Assembly (NCBI RefSeq): GCF_000400465.1
Contig: NW_008806274.1
Span: 240,244-272,243, forward strand
From: Wallemia ichthyophaga EXF-994
Taxonomy: Eukaryota; Fungi; Basidiomycota
DNA: 32,000 bases
Direction of reading: 5' to 3'
Position numbers and translations under genes: made by a program. The notes beneath the pieces were generated by a model. That model searched no databases. It was not told the DNA's origin and was given only the letters and a program-made list of their open reading frames with translations. Below, piece by piece: positions 7,112 through 26,758 of the stretch; position 1 is the first letter of the stretch, and every line of letters starts with the position of its first letter.

Positions 7112-10100
7112 ATGGAGATATATATTAACCCACTGAACATCGGCTCACTGCAGAATATGCCAGGATCTCTCAATCCGCCAATAAGCTCCGAAGGTCCTTC
7201 TACTTTAGCCCATTCGGTCAACGAAACAAGACAGAAATTTGAAAGCATGCCAATTATAGACTCAGGTATAGCAACTCCCAACGATTCCGATAGATCGAGG
7301 CCAACTTCCACTCCAATCGACAAGGAAGAGCCTTCAGCCTCACTGAGGTCTCCAATCGTCGCTGTACAGCGTGCTGTGTCTGAAAAGTCCAACACCATCT
7401 TTGTCTACGATTCTGCCAAGTTTGACGGCTTCGGTGAGGATCTCAATGACGATCGTGTAAAGTTTATGCAGGATAGACAAGGCTCAGGCGCTGCGATCGC
7501 TGGTTATTCAAGAGCCAGCCAAGTTGGAACCATTTCAGTTCTCATCAACAGCCAATCACTCACCAATTTCATCCCAGCTTTGAAATCTTACTCTGAGAAG
7601 TCAAAATTGGTGTTACAAGTCAACAGTTACGATAGAGACGCTGATCTTAACATAAGAAGCGGTATTTCAACCATTTTGGACGCTGCACACCAACTCGAAA
7701 ACTACACTATCTTGTTATCAGCAAGCGCCGAGGAAGTTGTTCTTAACTCCCAACTCGCTTATGATTTGCCTGGAAACGTCATCCACGCATTTGATGGTAT
7801 TTACGCTGCTAGAGAGAAGTCTAGTCTTCGCAACATCAAGCCGTCCTCAGGAGCTGCTGTCACATTCCACAGCTCAGAACCTGTCACAAAAGCTCTGGTC
7901 GTGCCTGGGTCTGATATCTCTAACGCCTTAATTGCTGGCTTAGACAAGTCGTATGGTTTGTTGGTCATTCACAAACTTCGTCCAACCAACTTGAAGGCTC
8001 TTAGCGAGAGCATTCCAGCCTCGATTGAAAATTTATTGGTCTACAACGATGAAAGGGCACAGGGAGTACTCTTGAATGACGTTGTATCTGCCGTTTTCAC
8101 CGCTCAACGTAAAATCAAGGTTAATGCTTTCAGCGACCCTGCACCATTCACCGCTGCTGTTCCTCAAGATCAATCTAAGTCATGCGTGTTTGTTGAGCAA
8201 CCAAACCAACTTACTGCTGATTTAGTTGGTTGTCTCTTTGCTCAAAACAAGAACCTTTCAACCAAAGTTCAAACTGCATACGATCACTTCATCGGTCAGA
8301 CCGGATTGTCATTGTCTCATTTAAAGATTGGCAAACAAGACTCAGGCGCAGCACTTGCACTTCCTGTCGAATCTTCAGTTGACTTCCTCAGCGTGAATAT
8401 TGCATCTTTGAAGCAAACGAATGTGTTCAAGTATGTGAAGGATGGTGGTATTGTTTTACTCGATGGCCCACTTCAGACACCCGAGGAGGTTCCAGCGAAG
8501 CTTTCATATGCCGACAAGCAGACTGTTATCGAGAAGAGATTGAGATTATGGGTTGTTGACTCTGTTGCAATCTCAGAAGATCACCAATCTGTCGCGCTTC
8601 TCGTTGCCTTCTTGCTCCTCTTCACATCTTCAGTCCCAAGGTTGCCAACAAGCGTCAAGGGCTTGCTCAAAAACTTCCTTCCAGCGTTGCAAAAGATAGA
8701 CACCATTATCACACACACGGAGGAGTCATTGTATGAGTCCGTCGTCGATAAAGCGTCTTGGTTAGCTGTGCAACCCGGCAAGGAGATCAAACCTGACTCG
8801 AGAATAGTTGGTATCAGCTTTAATGGATTATCTCCAGTCGCAGTCGGCACTCAGGACGAGAATCTCAACAGCAAGGTTCATGCAATTAAAGGAAGTTGGG
8901 TAGAGCCAGCATGGCAATTGATGTTCAACGAATCTTTTACAACTGGTGCATCGGAGTACGAAAGACCACTCGCAACTCTCAAACCATCGATCCCAGAGGA
9001 CACACATCTCATCACTGTCCAGGAAAACCGCAGACTCACTCCAGATGACTACGACAGAAATGTTTTCCATATTTCATTCGATACGAACGGAACAGACTTG
9101 AAGTACGAGATTGGTGAGGCTTTGGGTATCTATGGACACAACGATGAGAGTGAAGTGAAGGACTTCTTGCAGTGGTATGGTCTCCCAGCAGATGGAGTGA
9201 TTTCTGTCGAACATGACAATGGCAGAGTAGAGTCTAGGACTGTTTTCCAAGTATTCCAACAAGATGTCGATATCTTTGGTAAGCCACCAAAGTCATTCTT
9301 CGGCGCTCTTGAGGAGTATGCTTCGAGTAGAGAAGAGCAGCGCACATTGCGTTTCATTAGCTCAGCTGAAGGATCATCGACCTTCAAGAAGATGTCTGAA
9401 ATTGACACACTCACATACGCTGATGTGTTGAAGATGTTCCCATCGGCACGCCCACCAGCTTCCGAGTTATTGCACATGATCGGCGAGATCCACCCACGCC
9501 ACTACTCCATAGCCTCCTCGAATGCGGCAGTCGGTAACCAGGTAGATCTGCTAATTGTGACAGTAGAGTGGAAGACACCATCTGGTGAGTGCAATTAGGT
9601 TTTTTTTTGTCGATTAACAAAAGACACAGGCTCACCACGCTACGGTCAATGTACGCGCTATTTGGCTGGTCTCGCAGTCGGTACCAAGGTAGCGGTATCT
9701 ATCAAGCCATCAGTGATGAAGCTGCCAGAGCGCGACGATGCCCCTATCGTTATGGCTGGTCTGGGTACGGGAGCAGCGCCATTCAGGGCGTTCATTCAAC
9801 ACCGCGCATGGCAACGCGAGCAGGGCGTCAACGTAGGACCGCTCTTGTACTACTTCGGTAGCAGATACAGAGCCGCAGAGTACCTGTACGGCGAGGAACT
9901 AGAGGCTTACATGGCCGATGGCGTCATTACACATATGGGATTGGCTTTCTCGCGTGACGGCAAGGGTAAGGTGTACATCCAGCACAAGATGCTCGAAGAT
10001 AAGAAGATGTTGCACAAGATGCTGGCTTCTAAGGAGGAAGGTGGAGACGAGGGTAGCTTCTTCCTCTGTGGTCCTACTTGGCCAGTTCCAGATGTTTATG

Positions 10101-13227: not shown

Positions 13228-14205
13228 ATGACAATCGATAGCAGCAAATTGGATGTGATCAGATTGCGTTTACTCAACGACGACAACCTCGCTGATCAAT
13301 ACAGAGCGCTATTCACCTTGAAATCTATCGGTCAACAAGGCGATAACAGGGCGATTGACGTTATATACGAAGCATTACAGAAGTCCAATTCAGCGCTGCT
13401 TAAGCATGAGCTGGCTTATGTACTCGGACAGATAAACGACACCTACGCACTTCCTCTCCTTAACGACATTCTCCAAGACACCGAGCAGGACGTTATGGTT
13501 AGGCATGAAGCTGCTGAATCTTTGGGTGCTATATCTTCCCTCAGTTCTCTCGATATTCTTAGCAAATACGCAAATATGCCTGACATTGACATCAGCATCA
13601 GAGAGACTTGCGACATTTCCATCAAAAAAATTCAATTCGATCACCGCGACGGCAAAACTGCCGATGGCGACAACGAGCAGAATAAAATACCGGTTATAGA
13701 TCCAGCTCCTGCCACTAAATCGACAGACGTTACCGCCAACAATGTCGAAATTTTGCGCGAGTCTTACCTCAACGATCAACTCCCCCTATTTGAAAGGTAT
13801 CGAGCTATGTTCGGCTTGAGAAATATAGTACTCAATAGCAATTCTAATCAGTCTATTCATAACGCTGCTCTCAACAGCATAGCAGATGGTTTCGCCGATA
13901 AGTCGGTCCTTTTCAGACATGAAGTCGCCTATGTGTTCGGTCAGATCGACTCTCCAGCTGCGATACCCGCTCTGCTTAAAGTCCTCTACGATGACAAAGA
14001 GCATGAAATGGTAAGACATGAGGCTGCTGAAACTCTCGGCGGTCTCGGTGCCGATAGTGCTGATGCAAAGAATGCTTTGCTCGACTTTGCCAAGAGTATA
14101 GACGCCCCTAAGGTGATTAGAGATAGTTGCATCGTCGCACTCGACATGTTGGCGCATGAGCAGAGCGGTGCTTTCGAATACGCGGATGGAATTGAGAAGG
14201 CATAG
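13228..14205 (+). CDS. LIA1: Deoxyhypusine hydroxylase (HEAT-repeat), intronless
   Basis: Four HE motifs (LLKHELAYVLGQ, MVRHEAAESLG, LFRHEVAYVFGQ, MVRHEAAETLG), plus YRALFTLK, ERYRAMFGLRN and a C-terminal FEYAD. Confidence 0.95.
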   Translation: MTIDSSKLDVIRLRLLNDDNLADQYRALFTLKSIGQQGDNRAIDVIYEALQKSNSALLKHELAYVLGQINDTYALPLLNDILQDTEQDVMVRHEAAESLGAISSLSSLDILSKYANMPDIDISIRETCDISIKKIQFDHRDGKTADGDNEQNKIPVIDPAPATKSTDVTANNVEILRESYLNDQLPLFERYRAMFGLRNIVLNSNSNQSIHNAALNSIADGFADKSVLFRHEVAYVFGQIDSPAAIPALLKVLYDDKEHEMVRHEAAETLGGLGADSADAKNALLDFAKSIDAPKVIRDSCIVALDMLAHEQSGAFEYADGIEKA

Positions 14206-14267: not shown

Positions 14268-15867
14268 CTAAATGGTCAAACTCTCCAATCCGAATCCACT
14301 CCTCACTACATTCAAATCGGTTTCTATTTTTTGGAGCGTGTTTGTGAGATGACTGAGTCCTGTTTGTTGATTGCGCAATATATCTGACAGCTCCATCATA
14401 CCGTCATCATCCACAACCTGCCAACCTGCGCTTTTAGATGCAGTACCTTCCTCTTTCCTGCTCTTAAGTGCGCCGACGAGTGCCCAGCTCTCATTGACTC
14501 TACCACCAATCCTCGCCTTCTGGATTGTGTTGTTGATATGCTCGTACTCCGTACCCAGCTTCTCCTCTTCTAGCTTTATGCCGCTAGCGCGGAGATTAGG
14601 GAGGAGGAGGTGCAACCGTTTGACAATCTTGAGTATACGTGCGCTGAGTTGAGCATGCATAACCGCCGCTCTCTGCAAACGAGGGCTGTGATCGAGCGAG
14701 GTGTTAAGGAGCATCTTGCGCAATTTCTCCTGTAGTTCACTAAGACGCACAAGGTGGGCCGTCGCTTGCTTGCCTTGAGCTATCGCGCGCTTCTGTACAT
14801 CGTCCAAAGAAAATGCTGGTGCGGGTACTAAGCGTGTTGGGTCGGGGTTCTCGGATACTGCTCGCGCCCATGACTTGTCGTTCTTCACTATTGCTGGTCT
14901 TCCATATTGCGATACTTGCTCGGGCGGTACGAGGTTGTAGAAATAGAGCTGGAATGCACATGATGGGTGGTTCGGGTCCCATGCATTCTTGATTTCTTCT
15001 ATCACCGCTGCTATATCCTTATTCGAGGATTGTGGTGGTCTGCCGACGCTTTGTGAAAGTGTGCTCTGTTGCAATTGTTGGGGTTGCTGGGGTTGCGTCT
15101 GAGCCTGTGATTGACCGAATAAACTGCTCTGTGGCTGTGCTTGTCCAAACAAACTACCTTGAGCTGGTGGTTGCGACTGTCCGAACAATCCTCCACCTGC
15201 TTGCTGAGGTTGTGATTGTCCAAACAATCCTCCAAGTCCACCTGAAGGTGCAGCAGGTTTCTGTCCAAACAAACCGCCCCCAGATGGCTGCTGTTGCTGA
15301 GTGCTCCCGAATAATCCACCTCCGCCAGCTTGTGGTTGCTGTTGTTGTTGTTGAGTCCCTCCAAATAGTCCACCACTACTTGGCTGTTGTTGTTGCTGCT
15401 GCGTGCTACCAAAGAGTCCACCACCAGTATTGCCATTGTTAGCGCTATTCGCGCCGCTCGCGCCAAACAGACCACCACCACTCTGCTGCTGCTGTTGTTG
15501 GCCAGGCTGAGCGGAATTTTGGGTATTCTGGGTATTACTAAACAGGCTTGATGGTTGTTGCGAAGGCTGTCCAAATAGTCCACCCGATGGCGCAGTTGGT
15601 GCAGACGACTGTTGTCCGAAAAGACCTCCACCTGCTTCTGGTTTAGGTGCGGTACTACCGAATAATCCACCACCTGTTGCTGGTTGTGGAGCCGCTGGCT
15701 GCGCTCCTGCTGGCTGTTGTGCTGATTGTCCAAATAGACCTCCGCCGGTCGGTTGGTTAGGTTGGCTCGAGCCTGCACCCGCTGCTGCTCCACCACCAAA
15801 TGAGAAGCCTTGTACGCGTCAATCGCGCTTTCTGCGTCACTTCTTTTCACTCACCACCGAATGACAT
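14268..15867 (-). CDS. NUP57: GLFG nucleoporin Nup57/Nup54, 1 intron (15809-15854)
   Basis: MSFG exon, then an in-frame array of GGLFG repeats separated by Q-rich spacers, then the Nup54-type domain IKNAWDPNHPSCAFQLYFYNLVP...YGRP...NPDPTRLVP and a coiled coil. Confidence 0.92.
15200..15800 (-). repeat. GLFG/Gln-rich coding repeat region of Nup57
   Basis: Repeated GGT/GGA-CTN/TTN-TTT/TTC-GGN units interleaved with CAA/CAG runs; boundaries are approximate. Confidence 0.85.
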
Positions 15868-16220
15868 GTTGGACGTTTGTGTTGATGAGCCAAGTGAGCG
15901 GGTTCAGAAGCGTTAAGTGGATAGTTGAGCTATCAAATACTTGAAACCTACAGTTTAGTTTTACTTGTACCAAGTCGTCCTCGTTATCCCGCACGACGTG
16001 ACATGAACTCAAAGAGTTTTGTATAGCTTTTATTAACCTAATTGCATCCCGAGAATTCACAGATGACTGATTCTGCATACTTAAAAGCAGCCGCGACAGA
16101 GCAAGCAACAGCTCGTGGCTGGTAATTAAAGAGGGATGAAGATTTGCGCGTTTTTTAAAACGATGAAAGAAAAACCGCTGATATATACCAAGCTTCATAA
16201 CGTAAGTATCAACAATCGAA

Positions 16221-16231
16221 TAGTACAGCGG
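16221..16231 (+). promoter_or_regulatory. Pol III A-box-like element in the leader of the permuted tRNA
   Basis: TAGTACAGCGG fits TRGYNNARNNG. It starts 43 nt before G53 of the B box (16264), versus 45 nt from U8 to G53 in the mature tRNA. Confidence 0.6.
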
Positions 16232-16248
16232 GTGCAACTTGCTAGTTC

Positions 16249-16327
16249 ATGATGAGGTCCCAGGTTCGATCCCTGGTATCTGCAGATCTAGCAGATATAG
16301 CTCAGTGGTAGTAGCGCATCACTAGTA
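16249..16327 (+). tRNA. Circularly permuted tRNA gene, predicted tRNA-Thr(AGT): 3' half 16249-16284, 6-nt spacer 16285-16290, 5' half 16291-16327
   Basis: Acceptor GCAGATA/TATCTGC (7/7 WC), anticodon stem CATCA/TGATG (5/5), T arm CCAGG-TTCGATC-CCTGG (5/5), D arm GCT...AGC with GG, variable loop AGGTC and discriminator A. Joining the 5' half to the 3' half gives a 73-nt cloverleaf with loop CT-AGT-AA. Confidence 0.88.
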
Positions 16328-16332
16328 TTAAA

Positions 16333-16337
16333 TTTTT
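16333..16337 (+). terminator. Pol III oligo-T terminator
   Basis: TTTTT begins 5 nt after the end of the tRNA 5' half. Confidence 0.65.
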
Positions 16338-16648
16338 GTCTCTAATTGGAAGATATCATAGGACTCATTTTTACCTCTGTCAATGAATGTTCATTCTTTA
16401 CGCATTTCGGAATGTACGTGTGGGCATTGACTTAGAACGGTGGTCTATGAAGGATTTAGAACAAGTGACGCTTATAAAAGTATTAATGCTCAGGCTAGCT
16501 GTGAATGTGTGAGAATATATGCATTAATACAGCAGTATAAATAGTGTCTGTGTGTGTTGATACTGGTATATCTTTAGAGAGAGAAGAGAGTTCGAAAAAG
16601 AAGAAACAAGTGTTCAGTACTTGAGAGATCGCTGTGGTTGCCTACCAT

Positions 16649-26035: not shown

Positions 26036-26221
26036 TTAGTGATTGTGGTCGAGGTGCAAGGGGGAATGGCCGGGATAAACAATAAATAAGCCGCTTACAA
26101 TCAGCTACATTTATTCATTTAATATAAATTACACTCGCTGGAATCTGTGACGTATGCGTGGCTCACAGTGAGTGTTGCCCGTCTTCTCTTTCCACCGCGA
26201 CCACGACCAACAAACACAAAA

Positions 26222-26758
26222 ATGTTCTCAAGAATAGCACTCAGATCAACTCAAGCAGCCCAGCAAATCCCACGCCAATCCATCTCCACACCAAGAACGA
26301 TGCTCACTGCCGCAAAGAGTTTATACACAGCCAAAGCCTCAGCTACGGGCGGAGGACGCGCTAACGGCACCGCAAAATCGGAGACTACATCCTTCACAGT
26401 GTCCATTCAGCCACCAGGCAGTGAATCGAACACTAACCCAGAAGAACTCGTCGCCTTGGGCTACTCGACGTGTTTCCTTGGCGCTATGAAGGTGGCTGCT
26501 CAACAAATCGGCAAGAGCGGTCCATCCGATGCTGCCAAGTCATTTGCTGACGTTACGCTCAACAGCACTGACAGCAAGACGTCTCCTTTCACTATCTCCA
26601 CTCACCTCACTATCGAGGACACCAAACACGACATTGACACTCTCGTCGCCGTCGCGAAACAAACCCACACCGTTTGCCCTTACGAGATCGCCTTCAAGGG
26701 CAACATTAAGCAATCTTTCACTGCGATTGCCAAGGACGGCAAGAGTGAGTCATGGTAG
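26222..26758 (+). CDS. ohr: Organic hydroperoxide resistance protein (Ohr/OsmC family) with putative mitochondrial presequence, intronless
   Basis: LYTAKASATGGGR, TNPEELVALGYSTCF and HTVCPY...GN contain both catalytic Cys plus the conserved Arg and Glu. The N-terminal 26 aa are Arg/Ser/Thr-rich with no acidic residues. Confidence 0.85.
   Translation: MFSRIALRSTQAAQQIPRQSISTPRTMLTAAKSLYTAKASATGGGRANGTAKSETTSFTVSIQPPGSESNTNPEELVALGYSTCFLGAMKVAAQQIGKSGPSDAAKSFADVTLNSTDSKTSPFTISTHLTIEDTKHDIDTLVAVAKQTHTVCPYEIAFKGNIKQSFTAIAKDGKSESW

Follow-up and report, generated by a model that had tools for sequence, protein, structure and literature searches.

Anatomy of the locus

The DNA examined here is a 32,000-nucleotide (nt) window of Wallemia ichthyophaga EXF-994 (RefSeq assembly GCF_000400465.1, contig NW_008806274.1, positions 240,244 to 272,243), and it carries the two halves of a tRNA-Thr(AGU) gene in circularly permuted order at positions 16249–16327 on the + strand. 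The 3′ half, corresponding to tRNA positions 38–73, comes first (16249–16284; ATGATGAGGTCCCAGGTTCGATCCCTGGTATCTGCA) and includes the 3′ strand of the anticodon stem, the variable loop AGGTC, the T arm with its B box (16263–16273, + strand; GGTTCGATCCC), the 3′ strand of the acceptor stem TATCTGC, and the discriminator A73. It is followed by a 6-nt spacer, GATCTA (16285–16290), that contains neither a T run nor a promoter. The 5′ half, positions 1–37, is found at 16291–16327 (GCAGATATAGCTCAGTGGTAGTAGCGCATCACTAGTA) and is composed of the acceptor 5′ strand GCAGATA, U8-A9, the D arm with the true A box (16298–16308; TAGCTCAGTGG), the anticodon-stem 5′ strand CATCA, and the loop from C32-U33 through the anticodon AGT (16324–16326) to A37. 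Both halves were read directly and from an ARAGORN search of the swapped halves. Beyond A37 is a short trailer, TTAAA (16328–16332), and then five T residues (16333–16337) that form a predicted RNA polymerase III terminator. CCA is not encoded. This layout had been predicted from the sequence alone and was correct to the base, except that the T5 run, which had been placed directly after the 5′ half, is present but starts 5 nt past position 37.

When the halves are swapped, direct reading confirms full Watson-Crick complementarity in the acceptor stem (7/7) and the anticodon stem (5/5), and the T stem has 5 bp. The D stem consists of three good pairs and a C13/T22 mismatch. The consensus residues U8, A14, G18G19, G26/A44, C48, U33, T54-T55-C56 and A58 are all found, and ARAGORN calls a 73-nt tRNA-Thr(agt), which is the outcome that had been put forward as a check on the prediction. 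It had also been anticipated that standard scans would miss a gene in this form. ARAGORN, with no introns allowed, detected 0 tRNAs in the native 32-kb window, and no Rfam match to the window reached its gathering score.

Conservation of the permuted order

The identity of the host is given by the intronless gene for deoxyhypusine hydroxylase (DOHH) at 13228–14205. The predicted protein is residue-identical on 16 W. ichthyophaga contigs, including KE007224.1 of GCA_000400465.1, in agreement with the fungal host originally proposed. The closest DOHH homologues are those of W. hederae (84% identity), W. mellicola (79%) and a third lineage represented by sequence from metagenome assemblies (L013; 69%), and those of other basidiomycetes are at most 50% identical. 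The DOHH tree places the third lineage within the Wallemia clade (support 100/100), at much the same distance from each of the three named species. The window is nuclear DNA of a salt-loving fungus in the basidiomycete class Wallemiomycetes.

The permuted gene is located in a 780-bp intergenic stretch between a minus-strand Nup54 gene (5′ end at ~15867) and a DUF7137 gene (3′ end at 16648), and is on the + strand, opposite to both neighbours. The same slot between Nup54 and DUF7137 is occupied in all three lineages. The W. mellicola gene (L012, 13304–13379) comprises the 3′ half, a CAC spacer and the 5′ half, and the gene in the third lineage (L013, 13882–13960) has the same order around the spacer GTGCAAA. 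In each, both halves are on one strand, with the 3′ half upstream and only the short spacer between them, and after swapping ARAGORN identifies a tRNA-Thr(agt) of 72–73 nt in all three lineages. Conservation in relatives, one of the checks suggested for the prediction, is therefore seen at a syntenic site in both W. mellicola and L013. Misassembly, a further concern, is countered because all W. ichthyophaga assemblies examined, no fewer than 10 from W. mellicola and two independent MEGAHIT metagenome contigs share the order.

Of the 10 W. ichthyophaga loci compared, 9 share exactly the same 79 nt, and the tenth differs only at the first base of the spacer (G to T) and at the first base past position 37. 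Spacer variants are TATCTA in the W. ichthyophaga L001 haplotype, CAC or CACA in W. mellicola, and GTGCAAA in L013. The break at the canonical 37/38 site was borne out, as the same loop is split in all lineages. The 5′ half ends in CTAGTA, with A37 as its last base, and the 3′ half begins A(38)TGATG in every case, such that the anticodon-loop nucleotides CUAGUA|A are invariant and are divided exactly between 37 and 38. Given the bases at leader position −1 (C/T/T across the lineages) and trailer position +1 (T or A/T/C), every alternative 7-nt loop would lack a purine at 37, which fixes the junction.

Some contigs end or diverge in this region. Three W. mellicola contigs that extend from the Nup54 side (L031–L033) stop inside the 5′ half, 68–77 nt after position 38, and two from the DUF7137 side (L034 and L035) start 41 nt upstream of position 38, at the A-box-like motif of the leader described below. 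The stretch common to the broken contigs runs from the leader A box to position 37, equivalent to approximately 16208–16328 of the window. The breaks could reflect further near-identical copies of this unit elsewhere in the genome or a k-mer overlap at a graph branch. Separately, three sequences with an identical third-lineage DOHH gene (L013, L014 and L015) are 99.96% identical up to ~13392, about 490 nt before the permuted gene, and all differ from there on. L013 retains the Wallemia synteny (permuted Thr, DUF7137, ACS). L014 instead has a conventional tRNA-Asp(GTC) at 13774–13845 followed by a DNA polymerase zeta-like gene. This divergence is either structural variation or chimeric assembly.

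Covariation and selection

In the swapped alignment of the three lineages, 98.3% of stem cells hold standard pairs. Four pairs have changed on both sides, namely 4:69 (G-C/U-A/C-G), 5:68 (A-U/C-G/U-G), 29:41 (U-A/A-U) and 30:40 (C-G/G-C), and all four are in the acceptor and anticodon stems. Both of these helices can arise only by pairing between the 3′ half, which is upstream, and the downstream 5′ half. When the partner strand was slid by 1–3 columns as a control, pairing fell to 25–59% with at most one double-sided pair. The pattern is that expected of an RNA under structural selection, though with three sequences it falls short of statistical proof.

Outside the halves the lineages are barely alignable, and the spacer differs in both length and sequence. 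Among 11 W. ichthyophaga sequences, variable positions number 0 of 73 in the tRNA, 1 of 6 in the spacer and 24 of 141 in the adjacent flanks (counted from −110 to −1 and from +1 to +31), with p = 3.9e-5 in Fisher's test for tRNA against flank. One W. mellicola strain has U47C, at an unpaired position of the variable loop, and this is the sole change within the tRNA in that species. Beyond the tRNA, W. mellicola has the CAC/CACA indel in the spacer, and single-nucleotide polymorphisms, indels and a 7-nt duplication in the leader and trailer. The population data show purifying selection on the tRNA halves and, together with the compensatory pairs, the contrast between 0/73 and 24/141 indicates that the locus is maintained by selection as an RNA gene.

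Transcription signals

A run of five or six T residues is found 5–10 nt past A37 in every lineage (in W. mellicola T5 at 10 nt, and in L013 T6 at 10 nt), and none of the spacers, which are 3–7 nt long, includes a T run. One transcript would therefore be expected to span both halves. The run is polymorphic within W. ichthyophaga, being T5 in most strains, T7 in L005 and T4 in L007 and L008, and the next T5 is ~45 nt downstream of it.

The original prediction had reported no matching 5′ half upstream of the 3′ half. No complete 5′ half is present there, but the leader does contain what appears to be the remnant of an A box, TAGTACAGCGG, at 16221–16231 on the + strand, 42 nt before the B box. The distance from A box to B box in a collinear tRNA is ~44 nt. 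Similar motifs precede the B box by 52 nt in W. mellicola (TAGCCCAGCGG) and by 56 nt in L013 (TGGGTTAGTGG), and their AGYGGGT core is the sole invariant block in otherwise diverged upstream flanks. In W. ichthyophaga the motif (−28 to −18) is invariant in the 11 sequences. The consensus TRGNNNAGYGG occurs five times on the two strands of the 32-kb window, against 2.9 occurrences expected, and two of the five are the leader motif and the true internal A box.

The motif is a proposed TFIIIC tau-A site, and with the B box it would make up a TFIIIC-compatible promoter. Since permutation leaves the true A box downstream of the B box, the leader motif is proposed to put an A box back ahead of the B box, the order that TFIIIC requires. 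Inverted A and B boxes have been considered unsuitable for TFIIIC, and TATA-dependent, TFIIIC-independent transcription has been proposed for the algal permuted genes in a 2014 review (PMC3978253). The duplication-and-loss model for the origin of permuted genes predicts a remnant of the 5′ half of the upstream tandem copy (PMC3978253), and the leader motif may be such a vestige of an ancestral tandem tRNA.

A TATATA sequence at 16182–16187 (+ strand), 39 nt upstream of the A-box-like motif, is tentatively a TFIIIB/TATA element. A TATA motif is found at a like distance in L013 and is not found in W. mellicola, where the sequence is GATACACACC. A TATA box was for that reason dropped as a conserved promoter element. 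In W. ichthyophaga L007, 16 nt (GATATATACCAAGCTT) are tandemly duplicated some 70 nt upstream of position 38 (~16178–16193), which doubles the TATA-like element. A scan of the window for bacterial-type promoters and terminators, which is irrelevant to this gene, yielded no intrinsic terminators.

Precursor folding and proposed maturation

For the precursors of W. mellicola and L013, unconstrained minimum free energy folding yields a permuted cloverleaf with a T arm, an acceptor stem that the spacer closes, a D arm, and an anticodon stem that the two ends close. These folds also include a leader-trailer helix or a helix between leader and anticodon loop, which abuts the anticodon stem beside the cut sites. 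With the cloverleaf enforced, the leader|A38 site is located in a 2–4-nt bulge beside a helix in all three lineages, and none of the structures is a canonical 3-4-3 bulge-helix-bulge (BHB). In the constrained fold of the W. ichthyophaga precursor, leader bases GCUAG(U) can pair with C32-A37 of the anticodon loop, so that a 4-nt bulge (UUC|A38) holds the 3′ cut site. For W. mellicola and L013, C32 has a potential partner in a G at leader position −3, which recalls the anticodon-intron pair of ordinary eukaryotic pre-tRNAs. Of the 11 W. ichthyophaga sequences, 4 have T and 7 have A as the first base of the trailer, and A gives one more pair in the predicted leader-trailer helix.

Transcription and aminoacylation, like each of the processing steps outlined here, are predictions from the sequence. 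RNA polymerase III, probably directed by the exonic B box and the A-box-like motif 42–56 nt upstream, would produce a single precursor comprising the leader, positions 38–73, the 3–7-nt spacer, positions 1–37, a short trailer and the U run. The precursor would fold into a cloverleaf with the spacer loop closing the acceptor stem and the ends of the tRNA-coding part forming the anticodon stem. The Sen endonuclease would then read the intact mature domain and cut at leader|A38 and A37|trailer, with the proximal leader (16232–16248 in W. ichthyophaga) proposed, on the basis of the constrained folds, to be removed at the first of these. The fungal ligase Trl1, followed by Tpt1, would join A37 to A38, giving the expected junction ...CACUAGUA|AUGAUGAGG... 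in the spliced RNA. Removal of the spacer by RNase P and tRNase Z, along with CCA addition, would generate the expected 3′ end ...UAUCUGCA plus CCA, and A34 would be converted to inosine and A37 to t6A, as in other eukaryotic tRNA-Thr(AGU).

These steps could occur in either of two orders. The precursor could be spliced first to give a 76–80-nt circle, as in algae, where splicing precedes end processing and the circular intermediate has been detected. Alternatively, the ends could be processed first, via a base-paired intermediate in two pieces. As end processing of tRNAs is nuclear and splicing is cytoplasmic in budding yeast, a fungal permuted precursor may have its spacer opened first and then travel as two paired pieces.

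Other scans of the window and of related sequences

A search for further permuted genes, as had been recommended, covered ~145 kb of Wallemia-clade DNA with ARAGORN run on rotated duplicates. This locus was the sole credible permuted gene that it returned, and a tRNA-Asp (GTC, in L014) was the one conventional tRNA. The remaining candidate, a permuted tRNA-Tyr(gta) on the minus strand at 26296–26500, was rejected as a poor false positive of the method, of a kind to bear in mind in genome-wide use of the scan. Both of its acceptor strands are drawn from a single stretch of 11 nt, mismatches and G-U pairs are numerous, the "intron" is at 34/35, and the candidate falls inside an open reading frame (26147–26758).

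A conventional collinear tRNA gene was likewise discarded, as RF00005 scores only 18.9 bits (gathering score 29) and aligns to the leader and the 3′ half. The pairing of leader GCGGGTG with the acceptor 3′ strand in that W. ichthyophaga alignment is coincidental and is impossible in W. mellicola and L013. With introns allowed (-i), ARAGORN reports a tRNA-Cys(aca) at 15752–16284 with a 442-nt intron. This is an artefact that reuses the 3′ half of the Thr gene and has no counterpart in W. mellicola or L013.

Metagenomes were also scanned for a T arm followed after 15–40 nt by a D arm. No further permuted genes and no more relatives of Wallemia were found, and all six matches are junctions of two complete bacterial tRNAs, mostly Ile then Phe. 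One bacterial metagenome contig, L024, has a perfect tRNA 3′ part (...GAGGTCCCAGGTTCGAGTCCTGGTACGCCCACC) in a tRNA array at ~8190–8260 on the minus strand, but ARAGORN identifies no 5′ half in the sequence before it. This could be a tRNA-Ile-like gene that is truncated or interrupted, and it has no relation to Wallemia.

Assignment as a probable functional gene and alternative explanations

The cloverleaf formed after swapping, the synteny, the compensatory changes, the population invariance and the conserved T run all support the original reading of a type II (37/38) permuted tRNA-Thr(AGT), and the locus is very probably a functional, circularly permuted nuclear tRNA-Thr(AGU) gene in Wallemia. 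Several observations weigh against this assignment. The covariation was counted from only three distinct tRNA sequences, and its shuffle control, at 4–7 in 500, is not a probability. In the acceptor stem of L013, U6 and U67 are mismatched and U5 pairs with G68. Only four T residues make up the terminator run in two W. ichthyophaga strains. The leader/trailer structure is not a canonical BHB. In W. ichthyophaga, moreover, the candidate partner of C32, a G, is at −4 rather than −3, and the unconstrained minimum free energy fold (−30.1 kcal/mol, compared with −25.2 kcal/mol when constrained) is not a cloverleaf. W. hederae contigs from the Nup54 side and from the DUF7137 side both stop short of the site. 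Conventional Thr(AGT) genes may also carry most of the expression.

A non-functional relic would account for some of the features. Tandem duplication or rearrangement of a tRNA-Thr gene could have left a decaying pseudogene or, at most, a B-box chromatin site that binds TFIIIC, and the layout is the exact intermediate of the tandem-duplication-and-loss model, with a leader that seems to hold a decayed 5′ half or A box and no gene called here by ARAGORN or Rfam. However, a decaying sequence would not be expected to keep 73 invariant positions when 17% of adjacent flank positions vary in one species, nor to acquire four double-sided compensatory changes solely in the helices between the halves, across lineages with unalignable flanks, and the terminator is kept in all lineages. 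A site acting at the DNA level has no need of covariation in the acceptor and anticodon stems. Such a relic is very improbable. Slightly less probable still is a tRNA-like non-coding RNA that is used in its permuted form and never spliced into a tRNA, like the bacterial YrlA Y RNAs. The best relaxed Rfam match is to YrlA (RF02553; 21.7 bits, E = 0.025, 16231–16345, + strand), with which the locus shares a topology in which T arm, closed acceptor stem-loop and D arm come in that order and the two ends make up a stem, but the score is far under the gathering score of 69. YrlA is known from bacteria only, lacks an anticodon loop and has a Ro60-binding module, whereas in Wallemia the 37/38 junction divides an invariant loop, CUAGUA|A, the acceptor stem keeps its 7 bp and the discriminator A73, and a trailer of just 5–10 nt before the U run makes a long Ro-type stem impossible.

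The presence of PstI (CTGCAG), BglII (AGATCT) and SpeI (ACTAGT) sites within the 79 nt of W. ichthyophaga, and the breakage of several W. mellicola contigs and both W. hederae contigs in or near the locus, might point to an assembly artefact or an engineered sequence. That explanation is scarcely credible. All W. ichthyophaga assemblies examined have the same order together with natural polymorphism, including an L001 haplotype that lacks the BglII site, W. mellicola assemblies and the independent MEGAHIT contigs have the same order with different spacers, and the restriction sites are not conserved between species.

Implications

The confinement of reported permuted genes to six unicellular algae and one archaeon has encouraged the idea that they require unusual transcription (TATA-dependent and TFIIIC-independent) and splicing endonucleases of broad specificity. 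A conserved basidiomycete gene would show that the canonical opisthokont machinery, that is TFIIIC, a heterotetrameric ruler-type Sen, Trl1, RNase P and tRNase Z, supports permuted genes, and that permuted genes had an independent and recent origin from ordinary tRNA genes. Because standard annotation pipelines silently miss such genes, fungal tRNA sets that seem to be short of an isoacceptor merit re-examination. The locus is also experimentally convenient, as its 250 bp could be moved to Saccharomyces cerevisiae or Schizosaccharomyces pombe, in which mutants are available for every processing enzyme.

A more far-reaching proposal, which is possible but on present indications rather doubtful, is that permuted genes are the sole source of tRNA-Thr(IGU), the main threonine isoacceptor, in Wallemia, and that they would be transcribable via the vestigial leader A box and might mature ends-first. 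If so, what has been an algal and archaeal oddity would be essential to translation in a fungus whose TFIIIC, Sen, Trl1 and RNase P are standard. A promoter split between a leader A box and an exonic B box would be one undescribed for any permuted tRNA gene, and the leader A box would be direct molecular evidence for an origin by tandem duplication and loss.

Comparison with known permuted tRNA genes and related systems

By 2014, 34 permuted genes were known, from six algae and Thermofilum pendens, including a Thr(AGT) gene in Cyanidioschyzon merolae (PMC3978253). Type II genes have been described in C. merolae, Ostreococcus, Micromonas and the Bigelowiella natans nucleomorph (Soma 2007; Maruyama 2010; PMC3978253). 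The 2014 review noted that eukaryotes could in principle hold genes permuted at 37/38 and that most do not (PMC3978253), and a 2026 review confines the exceptional eukaryotic tRNA genes to "certain unicellular algae". The W. ichthyophaga genome paper used tRNAscan-SE 1.23 and reported nothing unusual. In agreement with the original prediction, no report of a permuted tRNA in fungi, Wallemia, Basidiomycota or opisthokonts was found in the searchable literature, with paywalled text outside this scope, and within that literature the gene is new to fungi.

The Wallemia gene resembles the algal type II genes in having the 3′ half first on one strand, a 37/38 junction, a T stretch after the 5′ half and no encoded CCA. 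In both, a short intervening sequence free of promoters and terminators closes the acceptor stem, no residue of the eukaryotic consensus is missing from the exons, and base pairing between leader and trailer is possible beside the junction. The Wallemia host, however, is a basidiomycete fungus and not an alga, and the structure at its junction is not a clean BHB. Spacers range from 5 to 74 nt in the eukaryotic genes listed (PMC3978253) and from 3 to 7 nt in Wallemia, so that the 3-nt CAC of W. mellicola, being under the listed minimum of 5, would be the shortest eukaryotic spacer. The algal genes are proposed to depend on an upstream TATA-like element and not on TFIIIC, whereas in Wallemia an A-box-like motif is conserved in the leader, at a canonical distance from the B box, and the TATA motif is not. 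Expression and the circular intermediate have been proven in algae by reverse transcription PCR, northern blotting and aminoacylation, whereas in Wallemia expression is predicted and a circle is one of two possible routes.

Thermofilum pendens also has permuted tRNA genes, and in these the intervening sequence is likewise very short (1 and 7 nt). These differ in having the junction at 59/60 in the T loop, an encoded CCA, additional introns, archaeal BHB endonucleases and an archaeal promoter.

Similarities to the intron-containing tRNA genes of fungi, which are processed by Sen2/34/54/15, Trl1 and Tpt1, relate to the cut sites. Cleavage in Wallemia would likewise be after 37 and before 38, a small bulge beside a predicted helix between the anticodon-loop side and the removed sequence holds the 3′ cut site, a C32:G(−3) pair is possible in two of the Wallemia lineages, and the mature domain used by the ruler mechanism is intact. 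The difference is that the Wallemia "intron" is open, with the leader and trailer as its ends, and that the spacer joins the acceptor ends. Ligation would therefore circularise the RNA or join two pieces, and would remove no internal segment.

YrlA (RF02553), the Ro60-associated tRNA mimic, has the same permuted topology and closed acceptor loop, and differs in its bacterial distribution, its Ro60-binding stem and the absence of an anticodon loop. The sub-threshold match to this family arises from the shared permuted topology, and relaxed YrlA matches in eukaryotic genomes might be a cheap means of flagging tRNA genes permuted at 37/38.

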